From assembly GCF_052425735.1 (NCBI RefSeq), contig NC_135769.1, positions 24,862,001 through 24,926,000 of the forward strand: 64,000 nt of DNA, in the 5' to 3' direction. The DNA comes from Oculina patagonica (Eukaryota). Position 1 is the first letter of the stretch, and every line of letters begins with the position of its first letter. The position numbers and the translations under genes are program-made. The notes under the pieces are model-generated. The model saw only the letters and a program-made list of their open reading frames with translations, did no database searches and was not told where the DNA came from. This document shows positions 43,701 through 55,363 of this stretch, piece by piece.

Positions 43701-45012
43701 ATTTCTTACTTGGCATGCTTTTGTTTGTTTCAGCTCGTACCAGGGGAAACAGCTCTTGCGTTTTACACAGCTACTAATCCAACTGACGAACCCATAACTG
43801 GAATTTCAACATATAATGTAATTCCATTTGAAGCTGGACAGTATTTTAACAAAATCCAAGTAAGCCAATACAATGCAGTTTGAGTCTTAAATTTGCAGTG
43901 GAAGTCTTGTTGTTTTTATCAGGGGTTGAATTATTAATTTTACCATGGTATGGTCAAGGAGATGAGGGTATTATTTTATAGGCCGATGTTTTTCATTTGT
44001 AAAAATGGTTATTTTAAATACTTATTTTTAAATTCTTATTTTTTAAAACATCTTTAGTTATAAATTCATTTTCATCGAACCAACTCTCCAGTGGCATTTC
44101 AGGAATTTCCAAAGACCTAAGGTCAAAAAAACATCACTGAAAATTCTGTGCTATTGTGCAATTAAAAGAAACAGATTTACTGTTTTAAAGTTATTTACAG
44201 TACTATTATTTCCTTGACAGTGTTTTTGCTTTGAGGAACAGAGACTCAATCCACATGAACAGGTAAGATCAATTTGTTCTCTTATTGGAATGCAACCTAG
44301 CACATACTTTTTAACTGCAAGTTACAGTTCTTATCAGTTTTAAGATTTTTTCAATTCAAGGGTTTTTTTTTTTTTGAAATTTCTTCATGGCCTACTTTTT
44401 ACCATTGCTCATAATTTATTTTTTCTTGACGTTCACAAAAGAGAGTAACCGATGATAAGCCAATGAGAAACCTGCAATCAGAGACGAAGCATGCATGGCT
44501 GGCGTTCAAAGGGGAGGGAGAATAGGATTTCAAGTGCAAAGCAGCGGGGGGGGGGGGGGGGGGGAGGGAGCAGAGGTGCGCGCTCTCCTCGTGCTTTGAG
44601 CTTTGAGCTTTGAGCTTGAACTCCCATTCTCCCTCACCTTTGAATACCTGTCATGCAGGCTACCAGAGGAAACATGAAACTGGCATCATAGGTAAAAAAA
44701 AACAAAAAAACTCTCGTTAAACATCACGTGACTGGTTTGGTCTTACACCTGATTGGCAGAGAAGACAGCAGTTTTGTTCTGACTGGTTTAAAGTCAGATT
44801 TCACGGGCTCACCAACGTACCTTCATAAGTGTGTGCTTTATTGCAGACATTTGGTTGATCTTGGTGTTGTTATTTCTTGGCAGGTTGATATGCCCGTGTT
44901 TTTCTACATTGATCCTGAATTCACCGAGGACCCTGCCATGGCTAAAGTGGACATCATCACTCTCTCGTACACATTTTTCGAGGCTAAAGAAGCCGAGAAG
45001 CTCGGTTTATAG
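40735..45012 (+). CDS. COX11: Cytochrome c oxidase copper chaperone COX11, 5 exons, about 287 aa
   Basis: Exons 40735-41145, 42732-42887, 43734-43859, 44221-44262, 44884-45012. Arg/Ser-rich presequence, TM + SYLAVPLYRLYCQ, PGETALAFY, NKIQCFCFEEQRL, MPVFFYIDP, TLSYTFF. Confidence 0.96.
41186..41790. mobile_element. P-element-like MITE with 7-bp TSD TATAAAC
   Basis: caggacgtaacaagtcgat / atcgacttgttacgtcctg; many ATCGA motifs. Confidence 0.8.
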
Positions 45013-45881
45013 CAGTGTTTATGTGACTGGGCTTGAAAACAAAAACTTCAATTTGATATCCTACCTTACAGACGCTAGTAAAAGGAAAAACAGTGTACCT
45101 CGTCACTTGGAAGGCGTTCTTTTATCAATAAGATTGCTTGCTTATAAGGACCTTGTGCAAAGGAAAGAGAAAATCAAATGCCTGCTAGAGTAGGGAATTT
45201 AAACGCAAAGCAATAATGTCCTTGCTACAATCACATTTTTGATACTGAGAGTCCCGGACATTAATACTCAGAACGCAGGAAAGTTTATTCGCTTAACGCA
45301 CAAAAAACCTTTTATTCCCTACAGTGACAAACAGCTAATTTTTATAACTATTACTGATTTTCTTTTTGCGCAATATTTTAAAAAGTTTATGCTTTAATTC
45401 TAATAAACGGTTTATTAAACCATAGCCATCTGTTAATAAGTTAAGGTGTCAATCATAGAACACAAATGGAAGATTATTGGTACACCTGACCAGAAGTTAC
45501 CTTTATTGGCTTTTTGTCTCTTGCTCGCGAATCCCTCGTCTCTTCCCTCGCGCGCTTCTCATACTCGCGCCCTATATTACTCAGCGCCATAGACTTTTTA
45601 GTAAACTATTAATAAAATGTAATAAGGCGACCATTTTGGAAAACCAGTCAATTTTTTATTTTCACATTTCGCTAAGGTTGACACGATTAAACCTCAGTAC
45701 ATTTTTTTGTTTTCTTAAGCTAATAGACTACGAGAAGTCCTCCTTTTCCCTCACTTCGTCGAACGAGAAGCGAAAAAAAACAACAAGAAAAAAACCAAAA
45801 CAAAATCCGGGAGGTAAAAAAAGCTGCATGCAAGTGCGAGATGCCGGCTGTGATGTTGAAGTTAGTAGAGTGCATATACCA

Positions 45882-48800
45882 TCACGTGATTGTTTTGTAG
45901 TGGAGATGATTGGCTATTCCCGAGTCCCTCTCGTCTTCTGGTCCTTCACCAAATGACACACTAGAAAAGCAACCATTCACAAGTTAGTCCATCGGTTGAC
46001 AAAGACAAGCAAGCATCCTTCCCCAAATTTGGTACAACGGTACTATATTTGTTTATTCTCACCTCTCATAAAGGACGTTTTCTTCTATTTTTGTAACGGA
46101 GAAGCGAGGATTGCAACTAAAACAGATTGAAAAAGAAAGCCAATTTAAAGTTCGAATAAAGTTACAATAATATCGTACATTCTAAAAATAATAATAAAAG
46201 TGTCAAGTTTAAAACACCCTTCCTCCCAAAATATATTTTAACACAACTCACGCCCAAAATACCCACGAAAATTTACGACATTGAAAACACGCTACCAAAA
46301 TCAACGCCTTTTAACCCCAAGAATCCTCCGTTTCACCGTCGTGTCCTTTTTAAACTCGAGTATATATTAATTCCTCTTTTGAACTCTTGTCGAAGCAAAA
46401 AAGACGAAGTTTACCTTTCATACAGTATGTTTTCTGAAGATCTGTCCTCATAACTCTGTGGCTGTGTGCAAACGCTGCAAATATATTAAAAATGAAACAT
46501 TTTTAAATTGTCTCCTACAGGCAAAGACCCAAGTGGACATAAACATACCTATCGTATAAAAGATTTTCTTGTGAAGATGTCTTTTCCATGACTTGCCTGA
46601 AAATAAAAGAAAGAGACCAAAAATTAATTGGTTTGGTCGAGACTAATCTGAAAAATACTGCCAGTAGTGTACTCATGCAGTAGTCTAACGAATCGTTGTC
46701 GGTATAACATTAATTCCATGTTTTTAAAAAAGCTATAGGGAAATGAAACAATAGACATTTACGTTTTCTCCAGTTCAGAATTAATGTTTTATGTAATTCT
46801 GTTTGACGACCACAACTGAAAATTAATTTATTGCAAGCTTGGAGCCAATTAAGTGATTTCATATTTCACGCCAAGTAAAAACCGTAAACCACAGCTCGCA
46901 AAATTCACTTTAAACCCCTTTTAAGGACAAACATCGTACAAACCTGCCAGAAACGAGATCCTCCATGGACAAAGATTTCTCAATATCGCTTGTGCAGGAA
47001 AAACGAAAAGAAAGTTAATGTGCACTAAAGAAATAGAGTTACAGAAGGCAAACGATACGTTGATTCAGTGTTTACCATTTTACTTTATGCGTAGTGTTTT
47101 TAAAGCGCCATGGTTGCAGGTTACTGTGGTTGAAACTATTACAGGAAAATGTGTGTGTGTTTTTTTTTTAAATGGCTAGGTCCCCCTAGCCCCCTCTTTG
47201 CTGACAATAGAAACTGTCGGGATTACCGGTCATCGTACGTCAGGGATCCGATCATGGTACTTTGCCAAATTGACTTCTTAATTTTGTCTTTTCCATTGCA
47301 AACAAGTGACGAAAATGAAGAAAAACATCAACTGGCAGATCTTGTCATGATGTACCACTAAATTTAAAAATGAACATCAAAATAATTGACTGGCAATCAG
47401 TAAAGAGAATTAACATCCTTATGTTAACAATAACAGTGATGTTTAATACTATGTACCTCATGTATACTTTAACATTTGATCCTTTTCGTGGTTTTATGTA
47501 TTTCACTCTGTAAAAAGAACGAAATAAACTGTTCAATCTTTTTTCACTGGCCACAAATATAGGACTGTCCACTCAGTATATTCTGGGTTAAAAAACTAGT
47601 CTGTAAAAAGTTCCTCTGATAATCACTCCCCCACACCGTAAAAAAAAACAAAACAAAACAAAACATCACCATACGTTTATATTGGGCTTCACATAAGTTT
47701 CCTACAGTTATGGCTTCTTTTCTGTGCATAGCGCGTCCTTCAAATTTTTATTTTAAAGTTGTTTCGACGTAAATTGCGTTCATATACAAATGCGTACGTC
47801 TATCCGACATGTCGACACTGAAACAAGCCCAAGTAAAAGCCATTTGATCTCAACTGTTAAACCAGGACATATTAAGTTCAAGTTAGGGTGTGAGAGCTAG
47901 GGTGTGACTCAATCTCGTGCCCAAGGTGCTTTTCCCTGGGCCGAGGTTGAAAAAAGTGATGAGGACTGGGACTGGCAGTTGCAACAACATCTACGGTGGA
48001 CAGGGAGAGATCGTGTTCAATTGTGATGGCCACGTACAGAGCAATTTTATACGCCATGTGGCCGGGAAGGATAGTGTGTTAGTTTATTATCACCTTACCT
48101 TCTTCTGTATAAAACAAACATGGAGATTATTACGCCAAGTAGAACTAAACCACCAACTGCCGTCCCGATCAGGAAATTAGTCCCATGAAACAGTTTACGC
48201 GATGACCTAGCCTCGTTCCCGCGGGGCGGTATACTACTACCAACACTGGATAGGGTAGGGGACTTCGTGCTTGCTGATAACACAACACTCAGCGATGCTG
48301 TAACTTTGGAAACCTGAATCGCCGATGAATAAACAGTAGCAGTCCACAGTCTAGTCTCGCTTTGGTTCCAGCCCCGAGAGGGAGACTGAGCACTAACTAT
48401 ACCAGAAGACACTGCGGTGGGATATGTTATAAAGCTTGATGGAAAGACTGGGCGTGTTATGGGTATAAACGTTGTCGGTTGAGTTGAAACGGTCCTGGCG
48501 GTTGAGTGGTGTGAAACGGAAGTGACAGGCGAGGCTGTAACATTTATAGAAGAAGCACCTAAAAAGGAATTAAAGGGACATGGTCAGCGTTCTTACCGCG
48601 CTGACCTGGACACTAGTTTTCACGTTTTGAAAAAAGACCACTGTGGACTTTTTTTCAAAACAAACCTTCAGAAATCTGCTTCAATCTTCTCAGTGTTTCA
48701 CTAAATGGGAAAATTTAGAAGAAAAAAAAAACACTGAGAAGATTGAAGCAGATTTCTGAAGGTTCTCTACGCGTATTTTGATTTCGGGTTAAGGTGGACT

Positions 48801-51800
48801 TTTTTCAAAACGTGAACGCTGACCATGTCCCTTTAAGATAGAGTTAAACAATGGCGTGCTCTGAAAATAAACTACTTGTCAATTAGAATGTTTTCACAAA
48901 AGGAACCAACATACTCTCTCGTAGTGTTCCTAAAATTTTGTCCAAGTTACTATTCAGTAAGCTGGCCACGTCGCCACTATAAGTGTCTCATAGGTAAGTG
49001 ACTGAGCCCAGCTGTTCAAGGGTGGATAACGCTATCCACCAGGCCCTAGTTGTTCAAAAAGTGGATAACTCTATCCACAGGATAAATAGCTATCCAGTGG
49101 AAAAGTATTAACAAAACATTCTGCACTATCCACCGGATAGTGATTTATCCGGTGGATAGCCTTATCCACCTTTTGAGAAACTGGGGCCTGATAAATCGCT
49201 ATCCAGTGGATAAGTGTTTACAAAACATACTGCGCTATCCACCGGAAAGTGGTTTATCCAGTGGATAGCATTATCCCCCCTTTGAACAACTGGGCCCAGA
49301 ACGATATAACTACCTTATTCTTACTAATTTTCGCGCTTACTTAATTTCGCGAAAAGTCGGAAGCCAAATTTCGCGAGTATTAATTTTCGTGAATGTAAGA
49401 AAAATTAGAGCAAAAGTGTATTAAATTTCGCGATTTCGTCAGTGTTTTTTAAAAGAAACTAATATACAAAGGACTGATTTTTCGCAATGTTTTTTCGCGC
49501 TTATTAAATTTCGCGATTATTTTGAAATCGCGAAAATTAGTACATGTGCTCGCGAAAATTAGTAAGAATAAGGTAATTGATGGCAACTCCATAAACCGAT
49601 GTAAAGCATAGGGACCGCGGTGATGGCTATTGGTTATGGTTTCGCAAAACAAGGAAAACTAACAACTTTGCTGTGATTGATTAAAGCAAGTCGCAAGAGC
49701 ATAATTAACTTTCAGCCATAGAAGTTAAAAGATATTCTGACGGTCACTGAAAAGCTACTTACACTGCCAGCACCTCCACCTCTGCACCATCCTTTTTGGG
49801 GTCGGGAATTCACCAGGGAGGGGGGGGGGGCATCTTGATCGGATAGAAGGGCTTATTTAAAGCGGATTCAACAGCAATAGCCTACTTGAAGAATAGAAAT
49901 TCATACTTTTGCTATCGATATAATGAAGAAACAAACTTACAAATTACTGGCATAATGTAAAACTTACGTTTGCAGCTAGTGACGAAGGGAAACTTCCAGG
50001 TTCCGCTTTCTAAACATGTTGTGGTCTGTCCCGCGGGATTCTCGGGAGTGAACCCAGGATTGCAGGTAACCGAGCATGTATCGTTAAACTTGTTGCGATT
50101 ACTTTCACCACAGCGATCGGGTTTCAATTCTCCGTTGTCAGGTTTTCTTAAAGGGGGACAGTAAATAGCTGCATGGAGAAACATAAAGAACCGCTAAGAT
50201 ATAGCACCCGCAGATTTACTTTGCAGAGCAATATGTACAAGCTACTCTGTCAGGAATTATGTTCCACAAGCGACTGCTGCAATTCGGGCCACCTGAAAGC
50301 CTTACTTGTAAATATTCAAAATCAAATTGATTGCAAGGTTGGTACTCGGCAATAGCGCAAAATGTATTGGCCAGTATTTCAACTAGCAGTGCTAGTCTTT
50401 GGAGCCACTAGCTCTGCTAGTTGAAACACTGGCCAATAAATTCATTGTACCCTTTTGCAGTGGTACAAGCCTCGAAATCAATATTGGTTTTATTTAGTAC
50501 ACTTAGAGTGACGTCAGATGTGGTACGAGCATTTCCTGAGCAAGAGATCCGAAAACAGACAAGTCAAGCAGTTTTATTCTTCATTGCGTGGTCCTCTGCA
50601 TTAAATTGTTTTCCTATTTTAACAATTCATTTTTGTATATGTCTAGAGCATCGGCCGAGCCAATAACCTGCATTTTTTAAAATCTAACATGACAGGAGCA
50701 AGATAAAACCATCAGCTCTAATCACAAAAACAAAAGCGTAGTCGAGCAGTTAATTCTCTTCACCTATTGTTATAATTTTCTTAAATGTAATTAATGAGAA
50801 CTTGTTGGACAATCAGGTCGAATCAGGTTTACGTGAACTGGTTTTGTTTATCAGTGTCGCCGGCCTACTTGTCAATACACGTAAGGAGAAAATTGACATT
50901 TATCACCTTCGACGATTAAAGAATCAAACGTCACTTACGTCTGTAGTAACAGTAGTAGATCACGTGACCAACAGGGTCTCTTGTTACACCATAAGGATGA
51001 GCACCAGCATAATCGTTCTTTGACAGGATTGTCAAATACTCCGTCTCGTAGTAAATGTATTCTAAGTTTGACATGGCCCCTCTGACCGCCTGGCAAGTTT
51101 TACTGCCGTAAGCTATCAGATAGAACGGCCAGTCCAGAGGGAGGCTGATGGGAGATAGGGCCGAGCCACGAGTGCTGCAGCAGTAGTAGATGCGCCTGTT
51201 GGAATATGCAAATGCATTTGCTTAATAAAAAGCGCAATACGTGTGTTGTTTTATTACAGAAACAACAACAAGGTTTATTTGAACTGCAAAATTACTAGTT
51301 ACTACCTAAACAATAAATAAATTAAAAATACATACAGTTGCTGGTCACCCAAAATAACTAGAAAGCTAAACTAGTTGTACCTATCGGTAAGTGCCAACGA
51401 GCGAAATACTCATGTTTGTTCATAAGAACAGATATTGAATGGTTTTTGATAGAACTATATTTGAAATGACCAAAATAAGGTAAATTGTATTTTAGGTAAT
51501 ATGCGAAAAAGTGCTACTATTTCAGTCTCTGGTGTTCATAAATGACACAGGCTTGATAGCCTGCGTAGCAGGCGCCGTAGTTTCCAGCGCGTGTATTCCC
51601 GCGATCGCGCACTCTTTTAAACACACTAAAAAACGTACACAGATGTCTGCTACGCAGGCTACGGGTTTGACAGATTGATAACTCTTGACAAATCTTTAAA
51701 TTCTTTTCAACGTTAAAATGTCACAAAATGTAGGCAATAAATGAGGTTTAATCACTGTTTTTTAAATACAACACGCGATGGTTTAAATGTTTCAAGAACT

Positions 51801-54800
51801 TCTTATAAATCAAATCCCAAAATCAAAACTGCTAAGATGCTTTTTTAAAAATAATTTTCAGTAATCAGAGACAGTAATGCACGGGTCAGATTTCAGTCTC
51901 GCATGCGAAGTGTCATGTTCAGTTACGCAAAACTTGAAAAATTTGAACAGAAAACAAAACTTGAACGGTCAAGGATTATTTGGAGACAAAATTTTTATTC
52001 AAGTTAACATTACATTTGCCGTTAGAAGCAAAAAACTTTTGACTTTCTTGTGTGTATGACATGCAGTAATTTTAGTGAGCGTCGCTTTGTATTGATGTTA
52101 TTCCTACGCGTAGCGAAAATACGTGCCAAATAAAATATAAACGGTATTTGATTTGGAATAAATCATCGGTCAAACAATTACTATAAACACAATCAACACT
52201 AAAAGGAAGCATTTACCCGACTTCAGCATTCTCATAAGTCAAGAAAACTCTATTTGAAGTCAACAGTCCGCTTTTGATTTTCATGTCTCTCTTCGATCGT
52301 AAATCAAAGGACTCCAAAGTCGAAAGATTATTTCGTCGCTTTGAAGACCTTGATGTTCATTTTTTCGGCGGTCGAATATTCTGTAGGGTATTCTCTTTCG
52401 ATTAATAATTCCCTAAAGGTGTATTTATCGGTAAAGGGATGAATGACCACATTGAAAATTTTAACAGCGAGCCGCGTGGACGCCATTTTGGTCATTTGCT
52501 CTCTAGCAAGGAGTGAGAGACTGAGAACCAGTTGGGAAGAACAATACAACCCAAATATGGGGTTTACTTACACCCAAATATGGTCAAAACAAGTCCCTTA
52601 CGCAGAACTTAAGATTTTCTCTGCCTATACACTCACACGCACACGGCTCTATGATTCTGCCGCCTCGACAGCCTCGCCTCTTGGCTCGGCTGTCTCGTTG
52701 GCAACTAGTTGGGTGACCACCATTTATTAATTTAAAGTAAGTATAAGGTTAGAAAAGAGGCATTTTACATTTTACACACTTAATTAAGGAGGTAGATTAC
52801 AGAACAAATAATTCTTAAGCATGTATGTACAATAAAAAAGATAATAGTAAAAAAGAAAAATGGCAGAAATGCCAGAATATAGCAATTAGTAGAAAAACCT
52901 AATAGAAATTAATGAAATGCAAGGATAATTCTCTTTTAAATGAGTAAGGGGTTAGAATCTTAAATCTCTCATCAATTTCATTCCATAATATAGGTCTATT
53001 ATATTGAATTTGCCATAGTTTGTTCGAAAGCTATTGTACTACTTCCTCGCATACATCGAAACGATTTCTTACCCATTTGCTTCCAAGTCTACAATGAATT
53101 TTCTCTTGAAAAGGTTTAACAACTGTTTTTCAATTGCTATCATTTTAATTGTCACACATTAAGGTTTCATAAAGAGACTTAAAGTTAGGACCGCACTTGA
53201 AAGCATAATAAGCAGTACCACATAACAGTACAAAAGTTTTTTTTTCAAAGATTTCTCTCCTCCGCAGAAGCTGCTGAGAGAATCTTAGGACGGGGGAGGG
53301 AGGGGAGCGTCAGTCGTGCATCGAGAGTCTAAAATTTTTCTCTCCCTAATCTTCGCACGCGCACTAATACGCGAATACAACAGAAGCCTCTGAAATTCAA
53401 AAGTTAGAATAACATTGCGCAGTACCACGCGAAAGCACTGCTCAATACATTTCTCAACAGTTTTTTTTATTTCAATGGTCTCAGAGGGCCACTTGGGTCA
53501 AAATGAAAATGAAAAAAAAAGAAATTAGAATCACATCGCTGGTATTTAGTATAGTTTAGAACAAATTTTTTTATGGTGGATTTCCACTGACGCGTAATTT
53601 TTTACGCGCGTGAGAAAATTTAGAGCAAATGTAAGAACGTCTAGCGTAAACGTGTAAGCAAGCCGTTTATACATTGTGTCTAATATTTTTCACGCACGTT
53701 AAAAATTACGCGTCAGTGGAAATCCACCATTAGTCTTTGTACTCACGTATTCTGATCGTAAACTCCCTTCGGCACTGTTCCCCACTTAGAGTTCTTGTTG
53801 TAAGATATAGCGGTATTTTCATCATCCCACTGGACCCAGCCAATGTCCATACCCCAGGGGCATCTCTGGCCCCACAAATAAATACAGTACTTCCCAGAAG
53901 GCCACTTGCTCCTCTGAGAATCGTTTATAGTAGATGTTTTCATACAAAACGATCGCTCGACATCCCCGTTCGGTCTGACGGCAGCATTTAAATGGAATTG
54001 CAGAGAATGTCTCGTCTGCGGGTCTGTATCCTCCAAGTCTTGATACAGTGTTCCTGTGTTCCACTTTATGGATGAGTCGGAGGGACAACCGTTAATAGCC
54101 ATTGGTAGACCATATAATCCCTCCGGCCAACCTGTCATTCCTAAAACGCGACACATATGCACCTCACAACCAAACCACAATTCGTGAGCTACATTCACAC
54201 AAGTACGTTTACTAAGCTTGAGTCCCTGCTCCGTATAAAAATAGCCAAAGTGGTTACATCGATAAACGTTTATGTGTACTTGCATTGGCTTCCCCCTCCC
54301 CAGGGCAAGCCAGTCTTCAAAGTGAGTGACCCTCCACCCAGGATCACCTTCCCCCCAGGCCAGTTTGCAGCTATCAGCCGACAAAGAAATGCATGAAAAG
54401 AAATGTATGGAAAGCTCTCTCGCCTAGGGTAGCTCGGTATGAAGGGTAACCCTCTTACCAGAGACAACTTTTTTAGTCTATATAAACAGGCCCAAAATAT
54501 CGTGCAAACATGGTATCTCCACAAAGTTCTGGTCCCCAGAGGCCGGGATCCTTCCGGTCAGCGCCAGGGATCGACCGGAAGGATCGTGGCCTCTGAGGAC
54601 GAGAATGCGTTACATGTCATAAGCTCCCTCAGCTGAGCTCTGCATATTCCACTCCTGACCGCAAGTGACTCGCGTTTTGCGCCCATGTCTGTCGTTTCTC
54701 TTCTGGTCCGTCACGCAACGCAGTCCTTTCCAATGAACGGAGAGTGCGTGACACAAAGAATCATAAGAGAAACACACCTCCGTGCAGACGACACCACGGG

Positions 54801-55363
54801 AGGTTTTTTATATTATCCATGCAAAACAAAGAAACAAACAGTCCAACCGACAAAAACGACATAAATGACTGCTAATAAAAACGTGCCGAGCATATTAGAA
54901 TTCGGACAAAAAGTTACAAAAAAAGGTTGATTGATCGATTGATTGAAAAGCTAGTAGCCTTTTGTAACGCAATGTGAGTTGAATTTCTCAATACGACAGA
55001 TTGCTAGTGGCGCCACAAGCTCAGCATGCAAAGATATTGTGCTCAGAAATTCACAAACGCTATTATCTTTCTTGATTTCTGGTCAGGATTTGAGATTGGA
55101 GTTTTTAGGTGTCCCATCAAAGATTCACGTGTAATAGCAAAACGCAGCAAAACGCATACTGCCGGAACATGTGCAAAAGTTTCCTATATTCCTCTCCCTA
55201 CGCCCCCGGCTACATAGGCTTAATTACCTCTAGTCTATAATAAAAATATTTAAACACTGCACGATAATATTTCATAAGAAATTCGTAACACAGTACCTTT
55301 GATTCTCGGTGATGGTAAAAGTAGATTTAAAATGAAGAGCTCAAAAACTGTTGCCGCGTACAT
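45882..55363 (-). CDS. Type I membrane protein: leader, apextrin C-terminal (ApeC) domain, Sushi/CCP, Ser/Thr stalk, TM, tyrosine-motif tail; 9 exons, about 536 aa
   Basis: Exons 55363-55297, 54140-53747, 51195-50939, 50168-49968, 48558-48099, 46988-46944, 46596-46549, 46474-46415, 45960-45882, all GT-AG with matching phases. ApeC: WPEGLYGLP..GCP...YQDLED...WPSGKYCI...CP.G...WDDEN...P.G.YDQNTRIYYCC...IYYCYY. Sushi: CPPL..PDNG...C.V.CNPGF...TC.ESGTW....SC. TM: FLIGTAVGGLVLLGVIISMFVLY-RRR. Exon 1 is the least certain. Confidence 0.82.
48574..48832. mobile_element. TTAA-flanked (Kolobok-like) MITE with internal palindrome
   Basis: ttaa|agggacatggtcagcgt...acgctgaccatgtccct|ttaa. Confidence 0.8.
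49004..49573. mobile_element. Cluster: nested Harbinger-type (gtggata-rich) MITEs 49004-49297 and a TA-flanked MITE 49313-49573
   Basis: gcccagttgttcaa-type TIRs; ccttattcttactaattttcgcg / cgcgaaaattagtaagaataagg. Confidence 0.7.
51558..51661. mobile_element. MITE tagcctgcgtagcag...ctgctacgcaggcta
   Basis: TIR with degenerate 9-bp TSD caggcttga / cgggtttga. Confidence 0.7.
53573..53731. mobile_element. Harbinger-type MITE immediately after the ApeC exon donor
   Basis: atggtggatttccactgacgcgtaatttt, inverted at 53702-53730. Confidence 0.75.

Follow-up and report, generated by a model that had tools for sequence, protein, structure and literature searches.

A conserved ApeC-Sushi membrane protein of the coral Oculina patagonica with NxxY-class tyrosine motifs in its cytoplasmic tail

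We analysed a 64,000-nucleotide stretch of genomic DNA from the coral Oculina patagonica (contig NC_135769.1, here C12, positions 24,862,001-24,926,000 within a 529-Mb assembly; hereafter the window), an AT-rich piece of eukaryotic DNA whose minus strand carries a genuine, expressed ApeC-Sushi-transmembrane gene that is conserved in anthozoans. The corrected coding sequence comprises 11 exons and 1716 nt encoding 571 amino acids, and the product is a predicted type-I membrane protein consisting of a leader, a full ApeC domain, a Sushi domain, a mucin-like Ser/Thr/Pro stalk of approximately 120 amino acids, one transmembrane (TM) helix and a tail of 114 amino acids. The tail contains three copies of the motif S/E-E-N-[L/I/V]-L-Y-[D/E]-S-x followed by a conserved C-terminal HLHYKTIT; it is conserved in corals and N-x-x-Y is enriched in tails family-wide. 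We favour, with a probability of about 0.45, a glycan- or microbe-binding receptor that acts by tyrosine-motif-dependent internalisation or phagocytic signalling through NPxY-class motifs. A sequence-only reading of the same DNA had proposed an inhibitory receptor bearing three motifs of the immunoreceptor tyrosine-based inhibitory type (ITIMs), a role that our results neither establish nor favour.

Gene structure and transcript evidence

All of the peptides quoted in the sequence-only reading were located on the minus strand between positions 45882 and 55363 (unprefixed positions are those of the window and exon names those of Table 1), in pieces bordered by canonical AG/GT. Its nine-exon model, however, had overlooked two micro-exons of 51 nt (exon 5b) and 54 nt (exon 8b) that are present in the RNA. 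Both have lengths divisible by three, AG/GT sites and identical lengths in other corals, and all introns of the 11-exon gene are GT-AG. The 'RRRS' junction of the nine-exon model does not exist: a direct splice from exon 5 to exon 6 would read YRR-S, and the RNA places RVKYIKPRKGSNVKVYM between them.

Transcript support came from the contigs of two runs and from the raw polyA reads of two more, which belong to a different study; all were aligned to positions 45400-51399 at a 90% threshold. At least seven spliced joints fell at predicted borders (Table 1), the skipped ends of all seven being CT..AC, that is GT..AG on the minus strand, and the joints 46116>46415 and 46595>46943 were each also seen in a single raw polyA read of the other study (one of them from run X21). 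The contig runs are labelled only 'RNA?', and a search of RNA runs turned up no run recorded as RNA that holds the sequence; we take the contigs to be spliced RNA because their GT..AG joints coincide exactly with predicted exon borders. Neither 46988>48099 nor 45960>46415, which the nine-exon isoform requires, was among the joints listed.

The expected joining of the ApeC exons to the TM and tail exons was upheld in part: transcripts link the C-terminal half of ApeC to Sushi and the TM exon to all of the tail exons, but the Sushi-to-stalk joint was absent among the joints listed. Contig pieces stopped precisely on the Sushi donor (49968) and on the acceptor of the C-terminal ApeC exon (51195) and then ran on, so these contigs are spliced onward rather than reading through introns. 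Those stopping at 49968 carry 77 further letters, which probably stayed unplaced since divergence in the stalk exceeds what the 90% threshold allows. The joints between exons 1 and 2 and between exons 2 and 3 lie outside the aligned stretch or were unplaced; for the first of these, which has no RNA junction, the exon model comes from the sequence, and the exon 2 acceptor at 54140 is phase-compatible, with 54131 as the alternative.

The start of exon 5 was corrected to 48558, which adds 49 amino acids. This position was chosen because the contigs extend to 48452, because its pyrimidine tract is strong, its phase fits and the frame is open, and because open reading frames (ORFs) of six other taxa are conserved from ASSINV onward, with AG at this point in four orthologous loci (L004, L006, L007 and L008). 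Two other phase-compatible acceptors, 48411 and 48447, were ruled out, as the RNA contigs continue past them.

The RNA contigs carry the same species label as the window and differ from it by approximately 6% in the stalk (48099-48452), 11% in the Sushi exon (49968-50168) and approximately 1% in the last exon. In a partial list of these differences, nonsynonymous changes made up 8 of the 11 affected codons in Sushi and 9 of the 15 in the stalk, and the four listed codon differences nearest the TM helix were all synonymous. The divergence points to a very divergent allele or a cryptic lineage, with a fast-evolving ectodomain. We also noted a repeated element at 48569-49600, in the intron between the Sushi and stalk exons and directly adjoining the exon 5 acceptor, over which RNA contig depth reached approximately 1000 compared with 20-50 on exons; its numerous loose ends and a joint on the opposite strand at 49194/49253 suggest a transposable element that is expressed, or an inverted repeat.

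Ectodomain, leader and membrane anchor

The ApeC domain is complete, split across two exons and above the Pfam gathering score (PF16977, cut-off 26.5): exon 2 matches profile positions 1-126 (E 1.2e-44, 153.1 bits) and exon 3 positions 128-208 (E 2.4e-27, 96.6 bits). ApeC domains have eight conserved cysteines (PMC8361754), and all eight are present, at residues 41, 88, 108, 116, 159, 160, 188 and 236 of the spliced protein. A sequence search of the PDB returned no solved-structure relative of the ApeC exon. Exon 4 encodes a Sushi/CCP domain (PF00084, E 5e-10, 40.1 bits, cut-off 20.7) that was also found in the sea anemone orthologs described below, and the stalk that follows is 121 amino acids long with 45% Ser, Thr or Pro. 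The spliced protein has a single strong hydrophobic segment, whose best 19-mer (residues 437-455, Kyte-Doolittle 2.37) contains GTAVG and is followed by the basic YRRRVKYIKPRK; the TM helix is conserved in seven other taxa. The earlier proposal of a membrane-anchored ApeC receptor was thus borne out by domain order, by transcripts and by coral and sea anemone orthologs. As judged from sequence, the exon 1 leader (Kyte-Doolittle 2.36 over its core) would serve as a signal peptide; it is kept in the orthologous coral locus L006, and the layout is that of paralogs with clear leaders.

Conservation and selection in corals

Searching with exon 5, which is single-copy in this genome, recovered exon ORFs at 59-86% identity in seven clusters, four of which led to genomic loci. 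Every tail exon was present in L004/L005 and in L006, and L007 held exons 3 to 5b, with the same lengths and GT-AG sites throughout. Towards the 5' end, the ATG and donor of exon 1 and part of the upstream 5' untranslated region (UTR) are conserved in L006, and exon 2 has 78% nucleotide identity to L006 with AG/GT kept. Lengths and splice sites are the same in L004, L006 and L007 for exon 3 (omega 0.12-0.24) and for exon 5b; exon 4 is conserved with its AG/GT in these three loci and in L008 (omega 0.17-0.28), exon 6 is conserved in L004 and L006, and exon 8b shows 97% nucleotide identity to L004 and 91% to L006 with unchanged length and splice sites.

The spliced tails of three corals align without gaps and share SSQENLLYDS and SHLHYKTIT-stop, each the same in all three, as well as the near-identical stretches EN[IV]LYESCN and E[ED]N[VA]LYES[VL]. 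Nei-Gojobori omega was approximately 0.3 for the tail, at dS of 0.2-0.6, and 0.12-0.28 for the C-terminal half of ApeC and Sushi; on this substitution pattern, the tail and ectodomain exons are coding and under purifying selection. Conservation of the tail tyrosines, on which the sequence-only reading had staked its case, holds for the motif tyrosines and that of HLHYKTIT, which are kept in all three corals, but the PQSYEDR tyrosine is not conserved.

No annotated full-length ortholog from corals came up in protein searches, which returned nothing beyond anemone proteins and ORFs of exon size on genomic contigs; two of the hits, P0001 and P0002, lie on contigs of approximately 1 kb that do not include the tail. 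Since tail exons of 45-60 nt easily escape gene finders, current annotation of coral genomes may under-represent the signalling portion of these receptors. In one ortholog the frame is interrupted by a TAA lying five codons ahead of the TM helix (L004:10409-10411 and L005:10409-10411, both contigs being from sample ERZ25067872), so that it reads …EARSSR* where the window reads …EARSSRK, although the TM segment and every tail exon beyond it are intact and highly conserved. A pseudogene of recent origin, an allele that is naturally secreted (a decoy) or an error of assembly could each account for this.

Tail motifs

Each copy of the tail motif closes a phase-2 micro-exon, and the splice site splits the codon of an invariant Ser. 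The positions that never vary among aligned copies are N(-3), L(-1), Y and S(+2), with N at -3 invariant in the three copies of each coral. None of the three residues conserved beside the Tyr occupies a position that defines an ITIM, (I/L/V/S)xYxx(I/L/V), and the two positions that do define it vary: L, I, V, A or P occurs at -2 and V, L, I or C at +3. Copy 1 and the C-terminal motif retain the ITIM positions; these are broken by Cys at +3 of copy 2 in all corals, by Ala at -2 of copy 3 in L006 and by Pro at -2 of one Nematostella copy. Copy 1 (LLYDSV) fits NxxY, YxxPhi and ITIM alike.

The three ITIMs of the sequence-only reading therefore stand in number but not in identity. LLYDSV and LHYKTI are present as described, whereas the supposed ILYESV reads ILYESC, which is not an ITIM, because exon 8b is included; the same inclusion adds NVLYESV, so that VLYESV restores the count. 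Three of the seven tail tyrosines match the ITIM consensus where approximately 0.36 would be expected (approximately 5% chance per tyrosine; P approximately 0.004), a probability that uses the composition of the tail and treats as independent motif copies that are duplicates of one unit. A reading of the C-terminus as a PDZ ligand was dropped, as -T-I-T lacks a hydrophobic last residue.

Sea anemone orthologs and ApeC-TM paralogs

By sequence, Nematostella LOC5520256 and an Actinostola protein fall into the same anthozoan orthogroup as the coral gene. LOC5520256 (XP_032221162.1, isoform X1; uncharacterised) was the closest full-length relative of the coral ApeC exon in a representative search (47% identity, as the old model P0005) and has the same order of ApeC, Sushi, Ser/Thr stalk, TM helix with a small-residue face and basic stop-transfer sequence; in its tail, phase-2 micro-exons end in N-x-L-Y-x-S-[I/L] motifs. 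It differs in carrying two motif copies (NPLYVSL and NILYESI) rather than the three of the coral, in lacking the HLHYKTIT C-terminus, in having one motif exon annotated as a cassette and in an annotated N-terminus that shows no obvious signal peptide. Its isoform X1 (P0215) contains SEHNPLYV|SL and SSQNILYE|SI, X2 (P0151) skips the 19-amino-acid NILYE exon and X3 (P0214) ends after NPLY; these annotations suggest that in Nematostella the number of motifs per receptor may be set by splicing. The Actinostola protein combines ApeC and Sushi (PF00084) and carries DNILYESVS. Stony corals and Nematostella have in common the motif, its position at the 3' end of phase-2 micro-exons and the split Ser codon; for Actinostola the comparison covers the protein motif only.

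A wider set of anthozoan ApeC-CUB-TM paralogs, all uncharacterised, comprises Nematostella LOC116614138 and LOC5506407, Acropora palmata LOC141896933, A. digitifera LOC107341595, Xenia LOC124455068 and Stylophora P0222. They share the N-terminal ApeC, the stalk and the single TM helix, and their tails contain repeated [E/D/K]-N-P-[L/I]-Y; they differ from the coral protein in having CUB in place of Sushi, in some cases a dual ApeC, and a predominance of canonical NPxY. In a census of six ApeC-TM paralogs (from Nematostella, Acropora, Xenia and one Logan contig), 20 of 45 tail tyrosines had N at -3, against approximately 2.8 expected (f(N)=0.063); 13 of the 45 were canonical NPxY and none fitted the ITIM consensus. 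The dual ApeC-CUB paralog of Stylophora, P0222, was left out of this count and read separately, and it too has NPLY motifs. In the orthogroup itself, NxxY accounted for 11 of 27 tail tyrosines, with a background f(N) of 0.06-0.07. Because the paralog tails are rich in NxxY and NPxY and offer no ITIM fits, the simplest reading of these sequences is that the ancestral tail signal of the family was NPxY-class, and that this orthogroup carries a Pro-less NxxY version which overlaps YxxPhi and mostly also ITIM.

Proposed function and alternatives

In the mechanism that we favour, the ApeC head, spaced from the membrane by Sushi and the stalk, would bind a microbial glycan such as peptidoglycan (PGN). 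The tail of the bound receptor would couple to adaptors of the phosphotyrosine-binding (PTB) domain or AP-2 type and, once phosphorylated, to SH2 proteins, and this coupling would lead to internalisation or to signalling for phagocytosis; splicing probably allows the count of motif exons to be tuned. The coral motifs would act as NPxY-class (NxxY) tyrosine motifs overlapping YxxPhi sorting signals. The ligand, the phosphorylation of the tail, the identity of the adaptors and the direction of signalling are what we infer in this scheme. NPxY, NxxY and YxxPhi tails serve uptake in LDLR and LRP1 and engulfment signalling in CED-1, Draper and MEGF10, and integrin beta tails use NxxY as well as NPxY. 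The coral protein resembles these receptors in being single-pass with repeated N-x-x-Y, some of it overlapping Y-x-x-aliphatic as in LRP1 (NPVYATL); this is a works-like comparison only, since the ectodomains are unrelated, the coral copies lack Pro and the coral side is known from sequence.

Several points weigh against this mechanism. The leader looks weak for a signal peptide, without a basic n-region and with Glu at position 8. Only one of the three ApeC DxED motifs is canonical (DLED), the others reading DDEN and ETEY, so that ligand binding may differ from that of the ApeC-containing proteins (ACPs) studied so far; these motifs are similarly degenerate in the Nematostella ortholog. The Pro of NPxY is replaced by Leu, Ile or Val in all three coral copies (by Ala in one L006 copy), so that canonical NPxY does not occur and the coral motif is, on its residues, of the NxxY class only. 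Throughout anthozoans, members of the orthogroup fairly regularly combine an aliphatic residue at -2 with one at +3, as an ITIM requires, and this pairing could mark a functional shift away from the paralogs. Finally, the likeness to the sea cucumber protein AjACP1, discussed below, rests on 'ApeC + TM' as summarised in PMC13673367.

The presence of signalling partners does not help to choose between the NPxY-class and ITIM readings, because the genome encodes both kinds. We found ten PID (PF00640) matches, that is several PID/PTB genes, and an SH2-SH2-PTP (SHP-type) gene at C6:24359902-24373672 (+), where 14 kb of one strand hold two SH2 exon matches and, after them, two exon matches to tyrosine phosphatase.

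An inhibitory receptor, as the sequence-only reading proposed, we consider unlikely. Here Src-type kinases would phosphorylate LLYDSV, VLYESV and LHYKTI, and the resulting ITIMs would recruit an SHP- or SHIP-type phosphatase that dampens immunity, for example in tolerance of symbionts or commensals. The three consensus matches with their low chance probability speak for it, as do the SHP-type gene and the retention of most fits, LLYDS[VL] and LHYKTI in all three corals, NILYESI in Nematostella and NILYESV in Actinostola. The domain plan is also that of vertebrate ITIM receptors (Siglecs, PECAM-1, SIRP-alpha and PD-1) and of Hydractinia Alr, in which a glycan- or ligand-binding ectodomain, a single TM helix and several (I/V/L/S)xYxx(I/V/L) tail tyrosines are combined; their ectodomains, however, are of the Ig superfamily, and conservation in the coral tail is centred on positions outside the ITIM. 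An acidic +1 residue (YD or YE) is moreover atypical of SHP SH2 ligands, which generally favour Ala, Ser, Thr or Val there, no paired activating receptor is known, and the breaks at -2 and +3 and the paralog census described above argue in the same direction. In its favour, on the other hand, ITIM-like motifs have been predicted in another cnidarian receptor family, Hydractinia Alr (PMC9546547).

We give lower credence to a composite history in which the ancestral NPxY uptake motif was remodelled, by replacement of Pro with Ile, Leu or Val and acquisition of an aliphatic +3, into true ITIMs, the strength of inhibition being set by inclusion or skipping of motif micro-exons. If true, the protein would be a splicing-tunable inhibitory sensor of microbes or symbionts, and ITIM-type signalling would have had an origin on a non-Ig pattern-recognition receptor well before vertebrates.

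Also improbable is an activating phosphotyrosine docking tail, in which acidic-N-x-L-Y-[D/E]-S-V would serve as hemITAM or Src-family SH2 sites and recruit Src-, Fes- or Syk-type kinases for phagocytosis or immune signalling. A pY-[D/E]-x-[V/I] site with upstream acidic residues resembles the SH2 preferences of the Src family and Fes and an acidic hemITAM context, and the genome contains many SH2 genes; in addition AjACP1, as summarised in PMC13673367, promotes rather than inhibits uptake. The tail, however, has no YxxL/I pair with ITAM spacing, and +3 is Val or Cys rather than Leu or Ile in most coral copies. The comparison draws on vertebrate SH2 specificities, and by sequence an activating tail is inseparable from the NPxY-class receptor that we favour.

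Least probable is a non-immune adhesion or developmental ApeC protein of the surface or matrix, with motifs for constitutive trafficking, polarised sorting or integrin-like NxxY linkage to the cytoskeleton: in sea urchin and Acropora, apextrins have been tied to the ectoderm and to metamorphosis (PMC1896004, PMC8361754), two of the three DxED motifs are degenerate and a mucin stalk with Sushi is common in adhesion proteins, but every ApeC domain tested so far binds PGN or bacteria (PMC8361754, PMC9585378, PMC13673367), and expression at moderate contig depth in the sampled runs is weak evidence either way.

Relation to known ApeC proteins

Membrane-bound ApeC proteins had appeared to be undescribed, and this proved wrong in part. 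The sea cucumber Apostichopus japonicus has a transmembrane ApeC protein, AjACP1, which is reported to recognise bacteria and to promote their actin-dependent internalisation (Xiang et al. 2024, Int J Biol Macromol 275:133737, summarised in PMC13673367), and LOC5520256 is present in NCBI with the same architecture as the coral gene. Given the published AjACP1, membrane ApeC receptors are not new as a kind, and this precedent points to uptake rather than inhibition. It shares with the coral protein a TM segment and ApeC, as far as the summary goes, but comes from another phylum, and papers on ACPs state that there are no cross-phylum orthologs (PMC9585378). A coupling of an ITIM with apextrin was found in no paper of the library searched.

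Secreted ACPs of amphioxus and molluscs bind PGN through ApeC and agglutinate bacteria (PMC8361754, PMC9585378). These short forms (amphioxus ACP1/2/3/5, oyster CgACP1 and snail BgACP1) share the eight-cysteine ApeC with the coral protein but are without Sushi, stalk, TM helix and tail, and their ApeC is C-terminal where that of the coral protein is N-terminal and degenerate in two DxED motifs. Miller et al. 2007 (PMC1896004) discuss only the MACPF-type apextrin. What is new here is the Sushi-stalk architecture, the Pro-less N-x-L-Y-x-S motif carried one per micro-exon, its conservation, and its annotated alternative splicing in Nematostella.

A central question is how corals and sea anemones choose between uptake, tolerance and rejection of given microbes and algae, and there are few candidate surface receptors with a recognisable signalling tail. 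This gene provides a concrete, conserved candidate, with a stalk-mounted head from a PGN-binding domain family and tail motifs that are stable from stony corals to sea anemones. We regard it as a good testable candidate for the handling of microbes or symbionts, not as a demonstrated inhibitory receptor, and the Nematostella ortholog makes the choice between uptake and inhibition directly testable, knock-down, mutants and uptake assays being routine in that animal.

Coordinates and genomic neighbourhood

Table 1. Exons and 3' untranslated region of the ApeC-Sushi-TM gene (window positions; joints as seen in RNA contigs).
Feature	Position	Strand	Content and evidence
Exon 1	55297..55363	-	Start codon 55361-55363; 22-aa leader with hydrophobic core LFILNLLLP; phase-1 GT donor
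Exon 2	53747..54140	-	ApeC N-terminal half (WPEGLYGLP ... DQNT), Pfam PF16977; donor AC/GTGAGT
Exon 3	50939..51195	-	ApeC C-terminal half (RIYYCC ... IYYCYYR), Pfam PF16977; RNA piece exactly 50939-51195
Exon 4	49968..50168	-	Sushi/CCP domain, Pfam PF00084; joint 50168>50939 in contigs of two runs
Exon 5	48099..48558	-	Ser/Thr/Pro-rich stalk, TM helix FLIGTAVGGLVLLGVIISMFVLY (GxxxG is GTAVG), then RR; RNA covers 48099-48452
Exon 5b	47457..47507	-	51-nt juxtamembrane micro-exon, R-VKYIKPRKGSNVKVYM; joints 47507>48099 and 46988>47457 in contigs of runs X1 and X2
Exon 6	46944..46988	-	SDIEKSLSMEDLVSG; joints 46988>47457 and 46595>46943 (cut +1) in contigs
Exon 7	46549..46596	-	Motif copy 1, ...SSQENLLYD/S(V); RNA joints
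Exon 8	46415..46474	-	Motif copy 2, ...SSENILYE/S(C); joints 46474>46549 and 46116>46415
Exon 8b	46063..46116	-	54-nt micro-exon, motif copy 3, CNPRFSVTKIEENVLYE/S(V); joints 46116>46415 and 45960>46063
Exon 9, coding part	45882..45960	-	Acidic stretch, C-terminal ...HLHYKTIT, stop TGA 45882-45884; contig piece 45873-45960, joint 45960>46063
3' UTR	45450..45881 (at least to 45450)	-	Same RNA contigs run to 45450, with indel-type differences

Near the 3' end of the gene, AATAAA occurs at 45660, 45507 and 45416. Approximately 450 bases past the end of the 3' UTR contigs lies the last coding exon of COX11 (44728-45012, plus strand; Pfam CtaG_Cox11, 3.2e-11), in convergent orientation; as COX11 is convergent downstream in the window and in L004, L005 and L006, these loci are syntenic.

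Elsewhere in the genome we counted 82 exon-level ApeC matches, which by our estimate represent approximately 40 genes, which points to a large ApeC repertoire in this coral. Three intronless full-length matches stand in tandem at C12:22360633-22390215, approximately 2.5 Mb from the gene described here, and large tandem ApeC clusters were seen on C14 (0.67-0.76 Mb and 1.17 Mb), C9 (20.4-20.9 Mb) and C4.

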